Part shown: positions 2,504 to 63,300 of the stretch, piece by piece
Numbering within the stretch: position 1 is the stretch's first letter
Layout: every line of letters begins with the position of its first letter
NCBI GenBank assembly: GCA_977030845.1
Contig: OZ365112.1
Coordinates: 18,662,001 to 18,726,000 of the forward strand
Direction of reading: 5' to 3'
DNA from: Fimbriosthenelais zetlandica
Taxonomy: Eukaryota
Length of the DNA stretch: 64,000 nucleotides
Translations under genes and position numbers: made by a program
The notes under the pieces: generated by a model
Seen by the model: only the letters and a program-made list of their open reading frames with translations
Told to the model about the DNA's origin: nothing
Databases searched by the model: none

Positions 2504-3496
2504 GGTAAGTCTTCCATACTGGCATGCGTAAGACATCATCACCTGCAATATAAGTTAAACCGATCATATTAGAGCAAATATAAATGTACCGGTACCTGAA
2601 TGTAAATGCTTTTAATTTATAAACTGTGTACATTCAGAGGGTATGAAATACTCATTAGGCATAAAGGCATGTTCAAGATATATTGTAGACTATCGACGTA
2701 AAAATAATCCAGCATAAATTTGCCATAGCCTACAGTTATAGTCTATAGGCCCACCACATTTTCATGGATCTTAATTAGAAAAAGTCCTATAAGTTAGTAT
2801 AATTATTTAATTTGTGGTAAATTAGTTCATTAATTGGTGTATCCAAATAAGAGTCCTAATTAAATTTAATATTTTATTAAATCTCTCTCAGGTCCCTGAA
2901 AAACAGAACTAGGTAATACTAATAGAGTAATAGTTTATGACAGATCTTTAACATTTAATCTTTTAGAGAAAACATACATGGGGCTTACACTTTGTTAGAG
3001 AACTGTGCTCAGGTTCTGACTTGTGAATAAGAGCAGAAGCTGGGCTAAAGTCACTATATAACCCCGGGTGACGTGACTACATGGTTAAAGCATATGATGG
3101 AGAGTAGCTGGAGCAGGAACTGTCAACCTCCTCCACTCCATGCTGCGCCAGGCTTGAGCTGGCAAGCCAGCAGCTGTCACCAGGCTGACCAGCGAGACAC
3201 TGCCACTCTCATTTTAGACATCACCGACTCGTCAAACATGTCTATTTTCCCACGAGCAATGCGGCTCCAACTCGGCCTTTAAGATCACTTTTCGTATTAA
3301 ATACCGGTGCCTGGGGAGAATGTTTGGGTATGAGGAAAGCGCTTGTTTTGACACGGTCGGGAGCAAGCCTGGGACTCTCCTTCTCCCCATCACGGCAGCA
3401 GTCCCCATCCTCAAGGCAAGCCAGCCAACCTGCCACCCCACCGGCCCAATAAAAAACCTCAAAAACACCACGCTTACCATGCCTGTCCGACGCCAT
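2504..3496 (-). other. Candidate 5' exons of an unidentified gene divergent from LMBR1
   Basis: Minus strand: ATG GCG TCG GAC AGG CAT G|gtaagc (3496-3478) and a 39-nt segment ttgcag|GTGATG...ACTTACC|gtgagt (2542-2504) join in phase 1 to give MASDRHGDDVLRMPVWKTY. No protein family recognised and no convincing continuation found. Confidence 0.25.
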
Positions 3497-4061
3497 CGTG
3501 GAGAAATGATTCCTTGATCATCGGACTACCGCCACATCTCATCTGGAAGATCTCCGTGGTCTGAATCCATCAAATAACTCGAGAAAATACTAGGTGTCAA
3601 ATCCCGTATGATCCGAGGTATCCTCCATACTTGATCATGACGTCATTTCCTATGTTGTTGGTGGTACCCTCTGCTGGCAAAATTGAGAAACACTGGAGAT
3701 AAGAAAAGCTTACCGGCACTCTAAAAGCCGATGAATTCTAATAAATATTCCGAAATTCGATAAATATAGAGTGTAAAATAATGTAGATCACATTTTCTCA
3801 TCTACGAGTTGAAAGAGAAACAAGAGGAAGACTGGAGAAAGTGTTACTGAGGCGCTAAATGTAGGCCGATTATTCGCCTAGTGAGAAAATGGTGAACTAG
3901 AGAGTGGCGTTGTAACGGTTATGGACCGGTTACATCTCGCACCCAGGGTGTTGCGTTGAAAAATGGCGAATTGTTGAGCCTGGCTCTGAGTGGAGACCCA
4001 GAATTCTGAGGAAATCTGTCTATCATGGATCGATCTATGTCACTATAGCTGATCAACAGAC
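3480..4061. promoter_or_regulatory. CpG-enriched putative (bidirectional) promoter region upstream of LMBR1
   Basis: Locally elevated CpG content directly upstream of the LMBR1 ATG at 4062; minus-strand GTAAGC donors at 3708-3713 and 3472-3477 point away from it. Confidence 0.45.
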
Positions 4062-7000
4062 ATGGAGGATGATATGGACGATGTGGATGTTCGAGAAGCA
4101 GTATTTCACAACGTGGTTAGAGAATGCATCGTAAGTATAAGGCGCCGAGAGTTCATTGTTTATGTTGGTAGACCTTACTATAGTATAGGCATTTATAAGC
4201 CGATGGCATGGGTAGGGCAGAGTCTATTTATCCAGTTTATCTTTAAAAAATCCTGATCAAATTCTGGCTATTATCCACCTCGTGTCTCATAATTTAAATG
4301 AAGCCCAAATGTGTGATAGCCGTCACAGTTTAGTGTTGCATAAATGTATAATAATGTGTGACTGAGTGTGACCTATTCAATAATTTTGTGGTACCGTACC
4401 ATACTTAATTTACTAAGAAATATTTGTAAATTACTGTACTGTGTATAGATCTTATGCTCTAAATTATGGTGATGTGTCTGTGACATTGAATTTCCGTTTT
4501 TAAAGTGATGATTGGCATCATTTCGTGTACTACAGTCTACACAAATTCTGTAGACCTGTACTAGGCTGTAGTGTAGTGTATAAGGGGGGACCCTGGGCAT
4601 AGTAAAGAAAGTAGGTTATAGTCTGCTTAAATTTAGCTACATGGACTTAAGCCCAACATCACTGGGGGGTTAACAGACCGTGTATTAACAACAAAGGACC
4701 GTGTTTGGGAGAATCAGGCCGTCCAATACTGGTTAGCTAGAGATGGATGAGTGTTAGTTTCTAAATGAAAGTCATATAACGAAATTTGTAACTTTATATC
4801 TTTACTCCCTACTTCTCAGAAATAAGAAACCATGAATATTTTCACTTTCACGTTAATGATTGAATTAAGAGCTAACCAAGTCAATTACCTACATGTAGTA
4901 GGAAATAGGAGTGAATACACATTCCAGGTGTTTTTATTTTACCTCATTAGTGCGCCATGTTAAAACCAGCACAGCCACTTAATGGCCAGCTTTTTATCAG
5001 GTTCTAACCTCGAGTTGATCATTAGTACACGGTGCAAGGGAAGATGTTTTCCAAGTGGGTGTGTATGTTTTGATAGGAGGGACATTTTAGCAGTCGATAT
5101 GTCGAGCATGCCATGTTACTTTTAGGAGGCTGGGCAGCGTTCCAAAAAGACTGAAAAACACTCACAGACTTCTCCATCAGTCCCAGCTCATGTTAGTTTC
5201 TTACAACCACCTGACTCTACCACTCTTTACTCGCACCCTGTATTGATGTAAATAACACTAGTCTATTGTGCCACATGTTTTTGGCTTGAATCCAGGGGAA
5301 TGGATTCGCCCTAAAGGGAGAATGTCCCCTATCTTGAGTAATTCGGTTACAGATTTGATATAGGCTGAGTCAAATTGAAGTAGACTTCTTCAAGTTCATT
5401 ATTCAGGCTCTTGTAATTTGTCACCGCCCTTATAGCTTGTGCTGAAGTTCTTGCTTGGAGTGGATAGTGGAGGTTGAATGTGTGGCATAGCTACTTCTGC
5501 TCGGAGAAGGAGCCTGTCAGCATGACTGCTAAGTTTGTTATGCATTCACTTGCTCTGTTTGTTCTTGGACGACTCTATGTTAGATTGAGGAGGAAGGAAC
5601 TGGTACAGAGTGGCCCACTTTCATCCTGCTATGAATAGTTGGCATCTCTCTATCAGTGTTTGTTGAACAGTTCATAGTAGATCGTACGAATAAAATTGTT
5701 GATGAAAATGCGACTGATACTTGGTGACTTAAAAAGTATCGCTTACTGATAAAAGTAAAATAACACTGGAAAAATAAGTCCACGTGGCTTTCTCTGATTG
5801 TTAGTCTAGTTAGTAATTGCTCACGAGGTTTTTGGTTACATAGTCAGCATGACTTGCCTTGATATCAAATGGGGAAGTCTGGACCTGTATTTGCACGTAT
5901 TGACCTTTGGCACTTACCATGTCTTAGAAAAAATGGAGCTCACACCTGATTAGCTCAAATCATCTGGTACTCTATGACTCATAGTACGTCTGGTTTGATG
6001 GCACAGAAAGGAAGATTGATCCTATTCTGATGCATGAACATCTTCATCTGAATGGTGATATAAAAGAATTGATATCCACATGTATACATAATACTCCACA
6101 TGGGCTAACTGTTACTAAATAAAAATTTGAAACATCTTTTTCCTGCCCTGACATTTCAGATCTGGCTGCTCCTGTTTATGATGCTCTATGTCTGCTCGTA
6201 TGCCACAATTTGTGCTTTTAGGAGGAGAAAGGAACAAGAGGACTGCCTCTCGGGTAATATAGACCTGCCTTAAAACAACACCTTGATTATGATAAACATG
6301 TCCTTTTTAAATGCATTCTTTACAAGTCTAACGTTTTTTATGTTGTATGATGATCTCCAGACTGAATTCCTTGGAGAATTAAAATGATAGCCTCAAGAAA
6401 GTATTATGTATATCTTTCATGAAGACGAAATATAGATGTGTGAATTTGGTCGGATATGAAGTCATTTTCTCTTCTAATGTCATTGTATCTTTGATGTTTT
6501 CTAGCGGACACTGACGATGCATTCGTATATCGAATTTCGTGAGTATAAAACCTTTGCAATTTTATCTTGCCTATACTTAAATCAATTCTCAAAAGGGATT
6601 GGCAGTATTGAAGGAGCTATACGTTCATATTACTGATGTTTATGGGTATCCGTTGTTCTATAGCGGGTTCTTTTATCCCTTTCATATCCTTGAATAATGG
6701 TTTTTCTTTGTGGCAGGTTGTGGATATGTACGTTCACCCTGGCGGTGTCGGGTGGGGCCGTCCTTCTCCTTCCTATCTCCATCGTGGCCAATGAGTTGCT
6801 CGTCATGTCACCCAAATCATATTACCTGAAATGGGTCAACTCATCCCTCATCCATGGTCAGTGTTAAAGCGCTCCTTCCTCCTTCCTTCTTATTTCATTA
6901 TATTCTTTCCTATTTGTGGTATTTTCTTGTATTCAACTTGTAACACAGTACACATGTACTTCCTTTCTTCTTTGTGAATTGTCAACTTTCAATATCTTTG

Positions 7001-54900: not shown

Positions 54901-57900
54901 TATTTACATAAAATATTTTCTAAACATCATGATATGCAAAGACAATTGAGGCTAGCACAAAAAGGTAATAATGAGAAGACTTACCTGCCATGGTAAGGGG
55001 GGCACCACCACCAGATCCATATGTAGATAAGAGGGATTCTGTGATCTCCCCGCGATAAGGCAGGGGATTGCAGTGACGATCAATCGTATATCCTGATAAA
55101 CCAACATTTTATTAATTATTACAACAATCATGACAGAAGCGTAACATTAACAATGTAATTTATAGGGGACCAATGTGTGTAGCTTCCCTCAGAATGATAA
55201 TCATTAGCCTCACCTTGGAGGACATAGAGTATGACTCGGGTTGCCACCTCCTGTACCTGCTCATCTGTAACGGTATTACTCTCTATGCCTGCTTCTCTCA
55301 GTAAAGTGTATGCATCAAAACACTGAAACAGATACACCATTGTTTAGATCCTGTATGTCAGGTTTATTCATCAGTGAGGGACAACCTTCCGGCCTGTTGA
55401 ATGTGATGACTATAAAATATGACATGACCTAAAGGTGTCTGCATGTCCTGAATAGCCGGGAGGGCAGGAAACCTATGGGAAAACTCCAGTATGTATTAAC
55501 TAGTTGAATCTGGTCCAATAATTCACGTGGGACAGCTCTAAATGTTAAAGTAAAATTCTAATCCCCAAGAAGAAATAATGTTCCAATATGTTAGGATCGT
55601 TAAGACCCTTTACATGTACCGGTTCAGTGATTGGGTACACCATAATATTACTTTGTATCAAAGGATCATGTAATCGTGATCTGGGGCGGTCGGTGAATAA
55701 ATCAATTGAAACTCATTACAACTGCCGCTGATGAAAGTCAGGGAAATATCAGGGGTACATCCAAGGCCGATACGTTCTCATTAATTACAACGATCCTTCT
55801 ATTTACAAATGAATTAGAACGAAACAATAGAATATATTCATGCCATCAATACAAAAATTCCATCAAGTTAGCTCAATCTAAAAAACAATTTGGGATAAAA
55901 TAAGTCTATATAAGCCTAATAGCTTATTGAATGACATGGCATTGATAGCGTAGTATGCATGTTCAAGGTAATAACATTGAATCTGTGTTACCTCATCATT
56001 CGTATTTTCTTCCTCAGAATGGTCGTGTCCTTCGTATGTATGCTCATCTTCGTGCGTCTCACTATGAGTATCCTCATGAGAATCCTCATTGGAATTATCG
56101 ATCTTAAGATCATTTAAAATCCCCTGCAATCTTTCTCTGAAACTTAATATTTTTTTAGTTGGAACTTCTTCACTGTGAGAGTGCCCTTGCTCTTTTGAAT
56201 GTCCACTATGAGAATGCCCTTTATGATAATCCCCATCTTCATGGTGATCCTCGTCCTCAGAATGGGATTCCCCTTTATGGTCATCCCCTTCTTCATGGTG
56301 ATCCTCGTCCTCAGAATGGGATTCCCCTTTATGGTCATCACCTTCTTCATGGTGATCCTCGTCCTCAGAATGGGATTCCCCTTTATGGTCATCCCCTTCT
56401 TCATGGTGATCCTCGTCCTCAGAATGGGATTTCCTTTCATAATCAGGGGGGTGGCCTTCCTTGGAATGGGAATCCCTGACACCCCTCTCATGTGAATTCC
56501 CTTCGTCTGAATGGCTGTCCTCTGGGATGACATCACCCTCATTGTCATCCAATCTCAGCCAATTAGTGAAGTTACTCAAAGTATAGTCAGTAAATTTCGT
56601 GGAACAGGCCTCCCTGACATCATGGATGTAGAAGAGCAGGACAGGGGCAGCTCTCTTCAGGTCAGTCTTATTTAGCCCTAGATCAGGATCAGCTCCCAGC
56701 AAGCTGAAGAGTGTATTCACACTAAGGCACTGAAAGAGAAATCAAATTGTTGAACAGGTTACATTATATGCTCATTTCTATTTATGAACATTAGGCTACA
56801 TTAGCTATTTCTGCTGAGAAAAAGTTCCAGGGTTCTACATCGAGTTTCCAGTTTTCTTACATATGGTTCAAAAAGAGCTTCATAATAGACATTGTGCTTT
56901 CAAACATCAAGAACACGGATGTAGAATACATTTGTAAGGATTATTTGTACCAGTGGGAGTGAAATAATGTTTTTTAAAACTGTAAGATGAAAGCTACGCT
57001 CAAATATTCATCACACCCAGGCGGCTGAGTCTATAGACACTGCCCACTCCAAAGGTGGGGCTCAAGATTCTCTATTTGCAAGTCATGATCTACTTCTGAT
57101 CTAAATATACATCCTGGTAGAGAAGAACAGGTTAGATTATATCACCTTGAGGAAATCCCACTTTCATGATTGTACAATGATTCACAGTCCTTGGATATTG
57201 ACTTAACAAGTAATACTGCCCAATTTTACCTTCATACAATATATATTTCAACAGTGTCAGTAAAATTCCTAAAATGTGAATATTCTAGTTTGTTTCATTA
57301 TTGAGGGCTGAGAGATTAATCCTTTGATGACATCATCCTGTCATGTACAGAAAAGCTGCGTTCAAGTGAGAAGTGTTATTTTTAAAATATCATATGAAAC
57401 TTCAAGACAGAATTGTAAAACATGAAAATGTTCATTGTCTGCTGAGTTTATGGAAAGGACTGCGTTCATGTGGAATACATTACGTGTAAAACTTACTTTT
57501 AAAGATTTTTAAAACACAGTACTTTAAGTCACATTGCACATAGGATAAGAAAAGGAGAAGCTGGTATTCTTTATCTTCATCTTGGCGTGAGACTCAAATG
57601 ATTAATTCATGTATGAAACAGTCACAGCCTCTTATTTCTTTGTATAAGGTCCATCATAGAATTCCAGGAGGGACAGGTAGGCTATTCATAGCAGCAGATC
57701 CTGTCTACACATTACTTACATTACATTCCCACACAACAGATTTACTACGCATTGTCCCCATGAAGTATATTAAACTCCTTCCTACATTAAAAATACATAT
57801 ATATCTTAACTAGTAGAGCTTTGGGACCGAATTACAGCCTATTTAATTACAGCCTAGACCTTTGGTAAAATATTCGACAAGTAGATAACCAACCACTGAC

Positions 57901-60317: not shown

Positions 60318-63300
60318 TTAAACTGCTTCCTCCTCCTCCTCTTCCTCCTCGTCAGACTCTGTAAATGCAAGTAATTTCATTAGATATTCAGTTGACATGC
60401 AGAATGTTGCTCATGCTTCTTTTTCTACTTCGTTCTATCCAAGCTCCGAAAGGCGGATATCATCAAACGATTTCTTCTTGATACTAGCTGAAGTCATGAC
60501 TTTGTGTTACAATGTTTTAAGCACCAGCAGACTGAAGATGTCTTGACTAAAGGCTGGCCTAATTAGATCTCAATTTAGGGTTATTGATAATTGAAGGACT
60601 TTAGTCCAGAGAAGTGTAATTGGTCAGATATTTTTGTGAATTCTAAACTATATTGACGATTGTAGTTGTTCCTGGTACGATTTGTCGGCGGCAGGTTTTT
60701 CATGTCCGTTCTTTCAAAGGTGCGAGTCTCTCAATAATATGTGATGTGCTTTCATCGACTCATTATTCATTCATTAAAGAAAATTACCTCAATTTATAGT
60801 TTAGTATCCAAAGTATCAACTAACCTTCTTCCTCTGCATTCTGGAGCCATTCGACAAACTTGCGAGTCTGGTCAAGGAAGACGCTCTTGCCCTTAGCGCT
60901 GTGGGCGCCACGGTGCCACTTGAGGATTGTATCCTCGCTCAGCACGTCAGCTGTAAAGATGAAATAGATCACATTATAATCATTATACCAAATCATGGTC
61001 TATAAGTTTATAATATATACACCATCTATTAGATAATTCATCTTCAGACTCATTAGATCATTTTTGCTTTCATAAAAATCAAGCAAAATAGGGATATCGT
61101 CACAGGAATCGGGCAATTATCGTAAACAGATATAATATTCATACATCATCTTCACAAATAAATGTGCACCTTTTCTTTAAAAATTACAATTTTGCTTCTT
61201 GATTTCCTCAGACTCATTAGATCATTTTTGCTTTCATAAAAATCAAGCAAAATAGGGATATCGTCACAGGAATCGAGCAATTACAGTAAACAGATATATT
61301 TTTCTTAAAAAACATGTGTATGTTTGCTTTCCTCAGACTCATTAGATCATTTTTGCTTTCATCAAATTCAAGCAAAATTAAGGATATCGTCATAGGAAGG
61401 ATGTAATCAGACCTGTACAATAAATATTATACATTCTTGATGAATACTTTAACTTGCGTAGGTTACATGCTATTTAAAAAGATTTCCTCAGACTCATTAG
61501 ATCAGATTATGCTATCATCAGAATCAAGCAAAAAATTAACATCTTCACAGGAAAAATGCATTTAAATCAGGTACACTGAAGCATAACTAGGATATATGCA
61601 TAGAACATGACTGCGTTTCAAGACCCTCAGACTCATTAGATCAAGTTAGCTATCAGTACATATCAAGCTGAGATGATATCATCAGTGGGTCGAACTTCAG
61701 ACAGGTATTGTTTGGGTAAACAGGTTTCAATGTTTGTCAACGAACAATATCATTTGAAAGCAATATCAAGTAATTCTGAAAACATACCTTTGTACAAAAG
61801 CACTACTATCTTTTGGAACACCTTGAGAAAGTTCTGGTTCTCGTAGCAGAATTCCTGAATCTTCAGGAGAAGAGAAAGTTCGGACTTCTCTGTCTGGGTG
61901 AGAGCAGCCAGCACCTGAGCGTGGGATTTGAGATGTTTCAGAGCTTGTTCAGCCACCAGCTCCTCTTTCTTGTTCCATTCAACTGACGCCATAAGAGTTT
62001 GCCAAGCCTGCAGGATACAAAACAGTTAATCAGTTTTTTTTCGTCGAAAGTAACGGTTGAAGACATTTAACTGAGTATTCATTTCATCAGATTAGATCAG
62101 TTATAGGGGTTTATCCTCACAGATAATAAGACTGGGTATATCATCATATGAAATGATCTTAAATTAAATGTCCACAAAACCAAATTAGCAAAAGGTTACA
62201 TAGAATTATTAATCAACCAATTAATAGACCCGATTTTAAGCAAAGTTAATAACCTTTGAGTAGGGATATCAGCTATCAGCTTAACTCACCATAACTACGA
62301 CTTCGTGCTCGCTTATCTGATTCTTCTTCATGCTCTCCTTGATATGAGCAATGATTTCCTTCACTGGTTCCTCGTTACGCATCATTTCCTCCATCTGTTT
62401 GTGGAGCTCCTTCTTTACTTCCATGGTTGCTTTAGCACGCTGAAAGATCAAGTTAACAGTGAAATTAAAGCTGGCATATTTCAGATGACTTACAATACTC
62501 AAAACCATGAATTACTTTTATCATTTTATCAGACATTAAGAATAAAGATTGCTTGCATTGGCAGACATATTAAGAATAAAGATTGCTTGCATTGGAACGC
62601 AAAGGAACTTACTTGATAATCGCATATTTGACTCAGGCCTGCCCCCTGAAAGTGATTCTGAAAGTTGGCTAGCGTCCGTTTGTTGATGGGCAACAAATTC
62701 TGTAAGAAAAATTACAGGAAATATTAATATATTTCTAATGGTCTAGACATAAAATATCAGTTGGTTGATTATTAGAATGAATAACGTAATTTAATGCCAA
62801 TACATTACGTCCTAAGTAAAGTAATTTATGCAAATTAATCTTTTAAATATAGGGAACTCTTCCCTGCTATGCAATACAGATCGATATATCTACTCTGCAA
62901 ATTTATCCATATAAAGCACGTACCATTAATTTCCCCTCCAGCCCAGCACGTTTTAAAGTACTGGCTATGTTGCTTAGGTCTTTCTCCACCAACCATGCCT
63001 TAAACAGATCGGTAGCAAAGCTCAGGGCTATTCCTGCAAGAACAAATCATGCACACACCATGCGTTATTACGGCGGGTAAATTAATCAGATCTACCAACG
63101 ACATCAACTCACTGAGGGATACTCAACAAAGCAACCTCCAATTCCACCTCTGGTTAGAGGAATTGAATACAGAATACAGTATTACACCCATTACAACTTG
63201 ATAACTTACTAATTTTAGTATGTTGGAGTGGGAGGAAAAAGTACACTATAACTATGGTCGGTGTAGGGAGCCGGAAGCAAGTAGAGGAACCCCATGAAAT

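Follow-up and report, generated by a model that had tools for sequence, protein, structure and literature searches.

A box C/D snoRNA in an intron of the BZW/5MP gene of Fimbriosthenelais zetlandica, predicted to target 18S rRNA G103 and adjacent to U57-like guides for A99

Does an intron of the BZW/5MP gene of Fimbriosthenelais zetlandica encode a guide for 2'-O-methylation of an 18S rRNA nucleotide for which no guide has been described, and could this guide derive from another one acting on the same rRNA segment? The locus lies in a 64,000-nucleotide stretch of contig OZ365112.1 (positions 18,662,001 to 18,726,000), which we call the window. We found at window positions 62079-62156, on the minus strand, a canonical intronic box C/D snoRNA (hereafter copy A). 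Its sequence, read directly in the 5' to 3' direction from 62156 to 62079, is U-CAUUUCA-U-AUGAUGA-UAUACCCAGU-CUUA-UUAUCUG-UGAGGA-UAAAC-CCCUAUAACUGAUCUAAU-CUGA-UGAAAUG-A. Its elements and those of its immediate host are the following:

62079-62156, minus strand: box C/D snoRNA copy A (from the sequence; 92.5 bits with the family covariance model R1; terminal stem in the MFE fold)
62156-62149, minus strand: 5' stem, (U)CAUUUCA (from the sequence)
62141-62147, minus strand: C box, AUGAUGA (from the sequence)
62127-62130, minus strand: degenerate D' box, CUUA (aligned with the CUGA of the relative L030)
62114-62119, minus strand: C' box, UGAGGA (from alignments of the snoRNA family)
62091-62106, minus strand: D guide, CUAUAACUGAUCUAAU (antisense to 18S 99-114; its position 5 is the C at 62095, facing G103)
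62087-62090, minus strand: D box, CUGA (from the sequence; invariant in the family alignment)
62079-62086, minus strand: 3' stem, UGAAAUG(A) (from the sequence)
62008-62289, minus strand: host intron of the BZW/5MP gene, 282 nt (GT at 62289-62288, AG at 62009-62008; flanking exons by tblastn)
61788-62007, minus strand: downstream exon of 73 codons, where the W2 domain starts (Pfam PF02020)

Box C/D snoRNAs are recognized by their two boxes and by the stem that joins their ends, and copy A possesses an AUGAUGA C box, a CUGA D box and a terminal stem of 7 bp (8 bp counting the outer U-A pair), which is formed in the predicted folds. Methylation guides carry, directly before box D or D', at least 10 nt of sequence antisense to a stable RNA, with the target opposite its fifth position; in copy A this element forms 16 bp and the nucleotide is G103. 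In animals, these RNAs occupy intronic sites on the sense strand, typically 70-80 nt before the 3' splice site, and box D of copy A is 79 nt away from it (the exon starts at 62007). The textbook intronic C/D snoRNA announced by the original prediction, with its stem, AUGAUGA, CUGA and 79-nt spacing, could thus be read in the sequence in all these respects. The D' side is different. The D'-like box of copy A is located just 10 nt from box C, and in the paralogue described below (copy B) the C' box reads UGAAGA, the D'-like boxes of both copies being degenerate (CUUA and CGUA). We scanned every possible D' end against the 18S, 5.8S, 28S and 5S rRNAs and rejected a second guide in either copy, as there was no target common to both and only 10 nt of room. 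The D' side of copy A is degenerate and probably inactive.

The host gene encodes a protein whose full-length homologues contain the PF25504 domain (HEAT_5MP1_2) and are named BZW or eIF5-mimic protein; no named BZW homologue exceeds about 52% identity to it. According to tblastn, the gene has around eleven exons extending from window position 60826 to roughly 65351, that is, beyond the window end, and Pfam places the W2 domain (PF02020) in the exons downstream of the host intron. A search for RNA runs with a 4.4-kb stretch listed none. A 309-nt contig of a relative found in a marine metatranscriptome, about 4% divergent, is spliced over three upstream exons and therefore supports the exon map at three upstream junctions, while being uninformative about the snoRNA. 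The sole ORF of at least 180 amino acids in the window (280 amino acids with a GTG start, 55878-56720, minus strand) had no Pfam match.

The target was evaluated on the genome's own rRNA. A pattern search of the rDNA followed by Rfam identified the 18S rRNA gene at positions 67-1969 of contig L009 (Rfam SSU model, 1744.6 bits). Around the target it reads GGCTCATTAGATCAGTTATGG, and the target region as read from the rDNA is GGCUCAUUAGAUCAGUUAUGG. The nucleotide at position 103 is G in all six rDNA copies found, as the original prediction had anticipated for the host; human and yeast 18S rRNAs have A. The predicted perfect 14-nt complement indeed exists at 18S 99-112 and places G103 five nucleotides from box D. 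Anchored at box D, the duplex extends to 16 contiguous base pairs (15 Watson-Crick plus one G-U) over 18S 99-114, the runner-up anchored site in the 18S, 5.8S, 28S and 5S rRNAs having 9 bp. By our own arithmetic, a perfect 14-nt match anchored at box D would arise by chance in some 6 kb of rRNA with a probability of ~2e-5. The energy of the guide-18S duplex was -20.8 kcal/mol, compared with a mean of -14.6 (sd 1.7) for shuffled guides; the guide is AU-rich, and a margin of only about 3.6 sd over the shuffles counts against its assignment. In the Rfam eukaryotic SSU model, column 103 is a lower-case 'a', weakly conserved and located in an unpaired junction, so that the position varies among eukaryotes and should be accessible. 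An isolated 19-mer in the same genome (L007; G000:C13:21833481-21833499) resembles the 18S segment with A at position 103 (GGCTCATTAAATCAGTCAT); with no rRNA found there by Rfam, it probably represents a fortuitous match or a short fragment. In addition, two 5S rRNA genes are present in the spacer downstream of the 28S gene (L009 7718-7836 and 8749-8867; G000:C41), on the same strand as 18S-5.8S-28S, so that in this genome the 5S genes and the major rDNA repeat are linked.

The snoRNA is not alone in its gene. A second copy, copy B, lies 424-501 nt past the window end on the minus strand (G000:C13:18726424-18726501; L024 424-501), in a more upstream intron of the BZW/5MP gene (the fourth one up on the exon map), some 95 nt before the 3' splice site of that intron. 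The two copies differ at 6 of 78 positions (about 92% identity), and their flanks are only 33-37% identical. None of the six differences touches the stem, C box, guide or D box; they are confined to the remaining 35 positions (P = 0.006). At the guide edge, a change in copy B converts the C-G pair with G114 into U-G, so pairing is retained. Searches by BLAST and model R1, with only 150 scored out of some 116,000 first-look candidates, detected no copies in this genome besides A and B.

Orthologous contigs of relatives were fetched with the 73-aa host exon as query. One of them, L030 (ENA assembly ERZ25767047), has an exon with 82% identity at the protein level and about 80% at the DNA level, and its orthologous intron contains five copies of the same snoRNA, which we call G103-type after its predicted target:

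L030 2489-2566, gene strand: G103-type copy
L030 3921-3997, gene strand: G103-type copy
L030 4565-4641, gene strand: G103-type copy
L030 4993-5069, gene strand: G103-type copy
L030 5433-5509, gene strand: G103-type copy

Alignment of the seven G103-type sequences from these two species showed that the 20-nt block made of guide plus D box, UAUAACUGAUCUAAUCUGAU, is invariant in all seven while the remainder diverges, and the introns are otherwise unalignable between this genome and L030. The C box core TGATG and an A at alignment column 18 are also invariant, with a degenerate C box in the L030 copy rel_1; the C' box in L030 is UGAGGA or UGACGA. The D' box of L030 is a perfect CUGA located only 9 nt after box C, which leaves no room for a D' guide there either. 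The terminal stem has changed from CAUUUCA/UGAAAUG in this genome to GCUCUA/UAGAGC in L030, with five of the seven pairs altered on both sides. In the seven sequences, 92.9% of the stem cells are paired, compared with 29-52% when the partner is slid, and none of 500 shuffles attained the observed covariation score. With a paralogue and five L030 copies that keep the guide unchanged, the sequences argue that the G103-type snoRNA is under selection, a conservation that rests on two species.

The distribution of these copies is uneven. The closest relative sampled, L031 (exon 88% identical in nucleotides), has no G103-type copy in the three introns covered by its contig; these include the orthologue of the intron of copy A (L031 1105-1335), which is without snoRNA. 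G103-type copies therefore change quickly in position or number from one species to another. The stretches captured for L026-L029 and L032-L034 yielded no G103-type snoRNA, and model R1 found no extra family members in the other loci searched. A pattern scan of metagenomes gave no match for the exact C variant and 20 matches with N opposite position 103, all of them devoid of a terminal stem and of an extended guide. Of the two that were checked, L038, which has a recurring sequence, overlaps an ORF, and L050 has no terminal stem. We treated these matches as chance. The L030 intron hosting the G103-type copies also contains two SNORA74-like H/ACA candidates (2862-3074 and 3472-3684, plus strand; 48.1 and 41.8 bits, cut-off 71), without a detected counterpart in the BZW gene of this genome.

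The next intron downstream in the host gene contains a second set of guides, which appear to use the same 18S segment:

60952-61787, minus strand: next intron downstream, 836 nt, with five tandem U57-like C/D snoRNAs spanning 61041-61690
61624-61690, minus strand: U57-like snoRNA 1, guide ending in UUGAUCUAAUGAGU followed by CUGA (SNORD57 25.7 bits; 14 bp to 18S from position 95; D+5 = A99)
61485-61553, minus strand: U57-like snoRNA 2 (SNORD57 33.1 bits; 14 bp; A99)
61330-61398, minus strand: U57-like snoRNA 3 (SNORD57 31.2 bits; 13 bp; A99)
61205-61272, minus strand: U57-like snoRNA 4 (SNORD57 33.3 bits; 13 bp; A99)
61041-61108, minus strand: U57-like snoRNA 5, with a weakened or broken terminal stem (SNORD57 28.9 bits; 13 bp; A99)

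In Rfam they score highest with SNORD57, at 25.7-33.3 bits (gathering cut-off 47). The guide, ending in GAUCUAAUGAGU before CUGA, pairs with 18S 95-108 and has A99 opposite position 5. Some of the C boxes are weakened (UGACGA, UGAAGA), and at guide position 1 the C of the vertebrate consensus is replaced by U, which forms a G-U pair with G95. U57 (SNORD57, RF00274) directs Am99 in 18S, the corresponding Am100 of yeast being guided by snR51; in vertebrates it is hosted in NOP56. BZW may be an old host of U57 outside vertebrates. As in this genome, the next intron of L030 carries five U57-like snoRNAs.

The U57-like guides also provide information on the target nucleotide. Those of this genome bear C opposite G103 and hence have tracked the substitution in the 18S rRNA, and the U57-like guide of L031 likewise has C opposite position 103. 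In the more distant L035 (exon 71% identical in amino acids), we found a U57-like C/D candidate at about 5495-5580 (plus strand), upstream of the orthologous exon and in its orientation, with the guide GGAUUUAAUGAGC before CUGA; it has U opposite position 103, which implies A103 in that species. From these sequences we infer that G103 is derived, common to at least three related species and absent from the more distant one. This gives partial support to the earlier proposal that the snoRNA marks a lineage-specific nucleotide; G103 also differs from the Rfam consensus, a weakly conserved 'a'.

No described family accounts for copy A. As the original prediction supposed, Rfam 15 assigns none: at gathering thresholds there was no family match on the window, and permissive scans of copy A gave only sub-threshold, box-driven matches, namely SNORD100 (24.9 bits, cut-off 58) and SNORD57 (18.6 bits, cut-off 47, E 0.35). 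The accompanying claim that no 2'-O-methylation has been described at this position also held, as full-text literature searches for Nm at 18S 102-104 returned nothing relevant; the planarian rRNA map has no site near 99-103. SNORD100 (RF00609) is the top Rfam score in both species (24.9-27.8 bits), arising from UGAUGAUA, the UGAGGA C' box, AUCUGA and the overall spacing. However, copy A has neither its D' antisense nor its D-side sequence, and with only the boxes aligning, the likeness is one of box architecture and does not support membership. SNORD57 shares more with copy A. It is likewise a box C/D methylation guide using a D-side antisense element, its consensus has the antisense AACUGAU(U/C)UAAU in common with copy A, the UGAGGA C' box of copy A resembles its UGGAGG, and in both species the intron next to that of the G103-type snoRNA carries five bona fide U57-like genes. 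Nevertheless, copy A lacks the four nucleotides (GAGC or GAGU) that separate antisense from box D in SNORD57, so that the methyl is predicted on G103 instead of A99. In copy A, A99 faces position 1 and G103 faces position 5, which sets it apart from SNORD57 by target as well as by score (18.6 bits against 47). The terminal stem and the C-to-C' segment are also unrelated in sequence to those of SNORD57, and the host is BZW/5MP, whereas that of vertebrate U57 is NOP56.

Removal of GAGU from the 3' end of the U57-like guides (UAAUGAGU followed by CUGA) leaves UAAU followed by CUGA, exactly the junction of the G103-type snoRNA. As both families are adjacent in one host gene in two species, the simplest history is that a guide was duplicated within the gene and then lost 4 nt. 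The original prediction of a U57-like ancestor with a 4-nt register shift thus fits the adjacent U57-like genes and the GAGU removal, but similarity outside the boxes and the common antisense, as seen in a MAFFT alignment, is not significant (SNORD57 scores copy A at 18.6 bits, E 0.35, and model R1 gives 16-21 bits on the U57-like snoRNAs). A resemblance over 8 nt of flank in L030 (UGUUCCCC) is too short to use, and the common antisense could also stem from convergence on one target. An origin of the G103-type snoRNA by intragenic duplication of a U57-like guide and a 4-nt deletion is accordingly plausible and unproven, with chances that we judge to be close to even or slightly below. If true, the split between the two types predates the divergence of the two species.

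Copy A is probably a functional intronic box C/D snoRNA that directs Gm103 in 18S rRNA. What is established here is its anatomy, its complementarity to the 18S rRNA of the same genome, the existence of a paralogue and the conservation with covariation in a second species; we infer its expression, its assembly into a snoRNP and the methyl on G103. The snoRNA would be spliced out of the BZW/5MP pre-mRNA and trimmed to about 76-78 nt, and a fibrillarin snoRNP would assemble on the C/D kink-turn and terminal stem; members of the class are stable RNAs of 60-100 nt, bound by fibrillarin, NOP56, NOP58 and SNU13, whose target nucleotides carry the 2'-O-methyl. The sole working antisense element, upstream of box D, would then pair with 18S 99-114 and direct 2'-O-methylation to G103, which faces guide position 5. 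The five U57-like snoRNAs of the adjoining intron would work alongside it, directing Am99 on the same rRNA segment.

Several other explanations deserve consideration. The 18S stretch paired in this duplex (99-114) and the one paired by the U57-like guides (95-108) have about 10 nt in common, and in each of the two species the guide families are transcribed together from a single host gene, which would suit an RNA that binds this segment without methylating it, either as a folding chaperone or as a competitor tuning the access of the U57-like snoRNP and the level of Am99. Overlapping guides for nearby sites are common. The guide of copy A, however, abuts a perfect D box and is paired from position 1, a geometry that supports methylation, and the sequence contains no hint of a non-catalytic snoRNP; we regard this role as unlikely. 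One could also see in copy A a decaying, functionless duplicate of a U57-like gene that lost four bases beside box D, given that it shares a gene with five U57-like copies, that its D' box is degenerate (CUUA, and CGUA in copy B) and that SNORD57 is among its weak Rfam matches (18.6 bits). Yet seven copies in two species have maintained the invariant 20-nt guide-plus-D block together with compensatory stem changes in introns that are otherwise unalignable, which makes decay very improbable. Finally, the target scan covered rRNAs only, so copy A might be a genuine methylation guide whose true substrate is another RNA (snRNA, tRNA or mRNA), with the 18S match being secondary. Against this stand the 16-bp D-anchored match to a universally conserved rRNA segment, invariant across species, and the use of that same segment by the sister guides next door, and we consider such a substrate hardly credible. 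Guidance of methylation at 18S G103 is therefore the function that we retain for copy A.

This function would add a 2'-O-methylation site to the 18S 5' domain, four nucleotides from the universally conserved Am99 and on a base that departs from the eukaryotic consensus. More tentatively, a duplicate of U57 may have lost four bases, sliding its register by four and thereby creating a new Gm103 on a lineage-substituted base, with parent and derivative both retained under selection in at least two species; if this is true, the locus offers a clean natural example of the birth of a new rRNA modification site. With the presumed parent guides in the next intron, it represents a testable case of a guide duplication and a small indel moving a modification to a new nucleotide, and it bears on the co-evolution of rRNA substitutions and modifications. 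The mechanism is ordinary snoRNA biology, and lineage-specific guides are to be expected in any newly examined clade. The novelty resides in the target, 18S G103, for which no modification has been reported in model organisms, and not in the type of molecule, which is ordinary. Of the 61 sites in Drosophila, 8 have no counterpart in five other model organisms (PMC11014333). The case described here likewise consists of a guide-and-site pair outside the conserved core, but differs from such lineage-specific guides in that its site is predicted, falls on a base off the eukaryotic consensus and has a putative parent guide next door.
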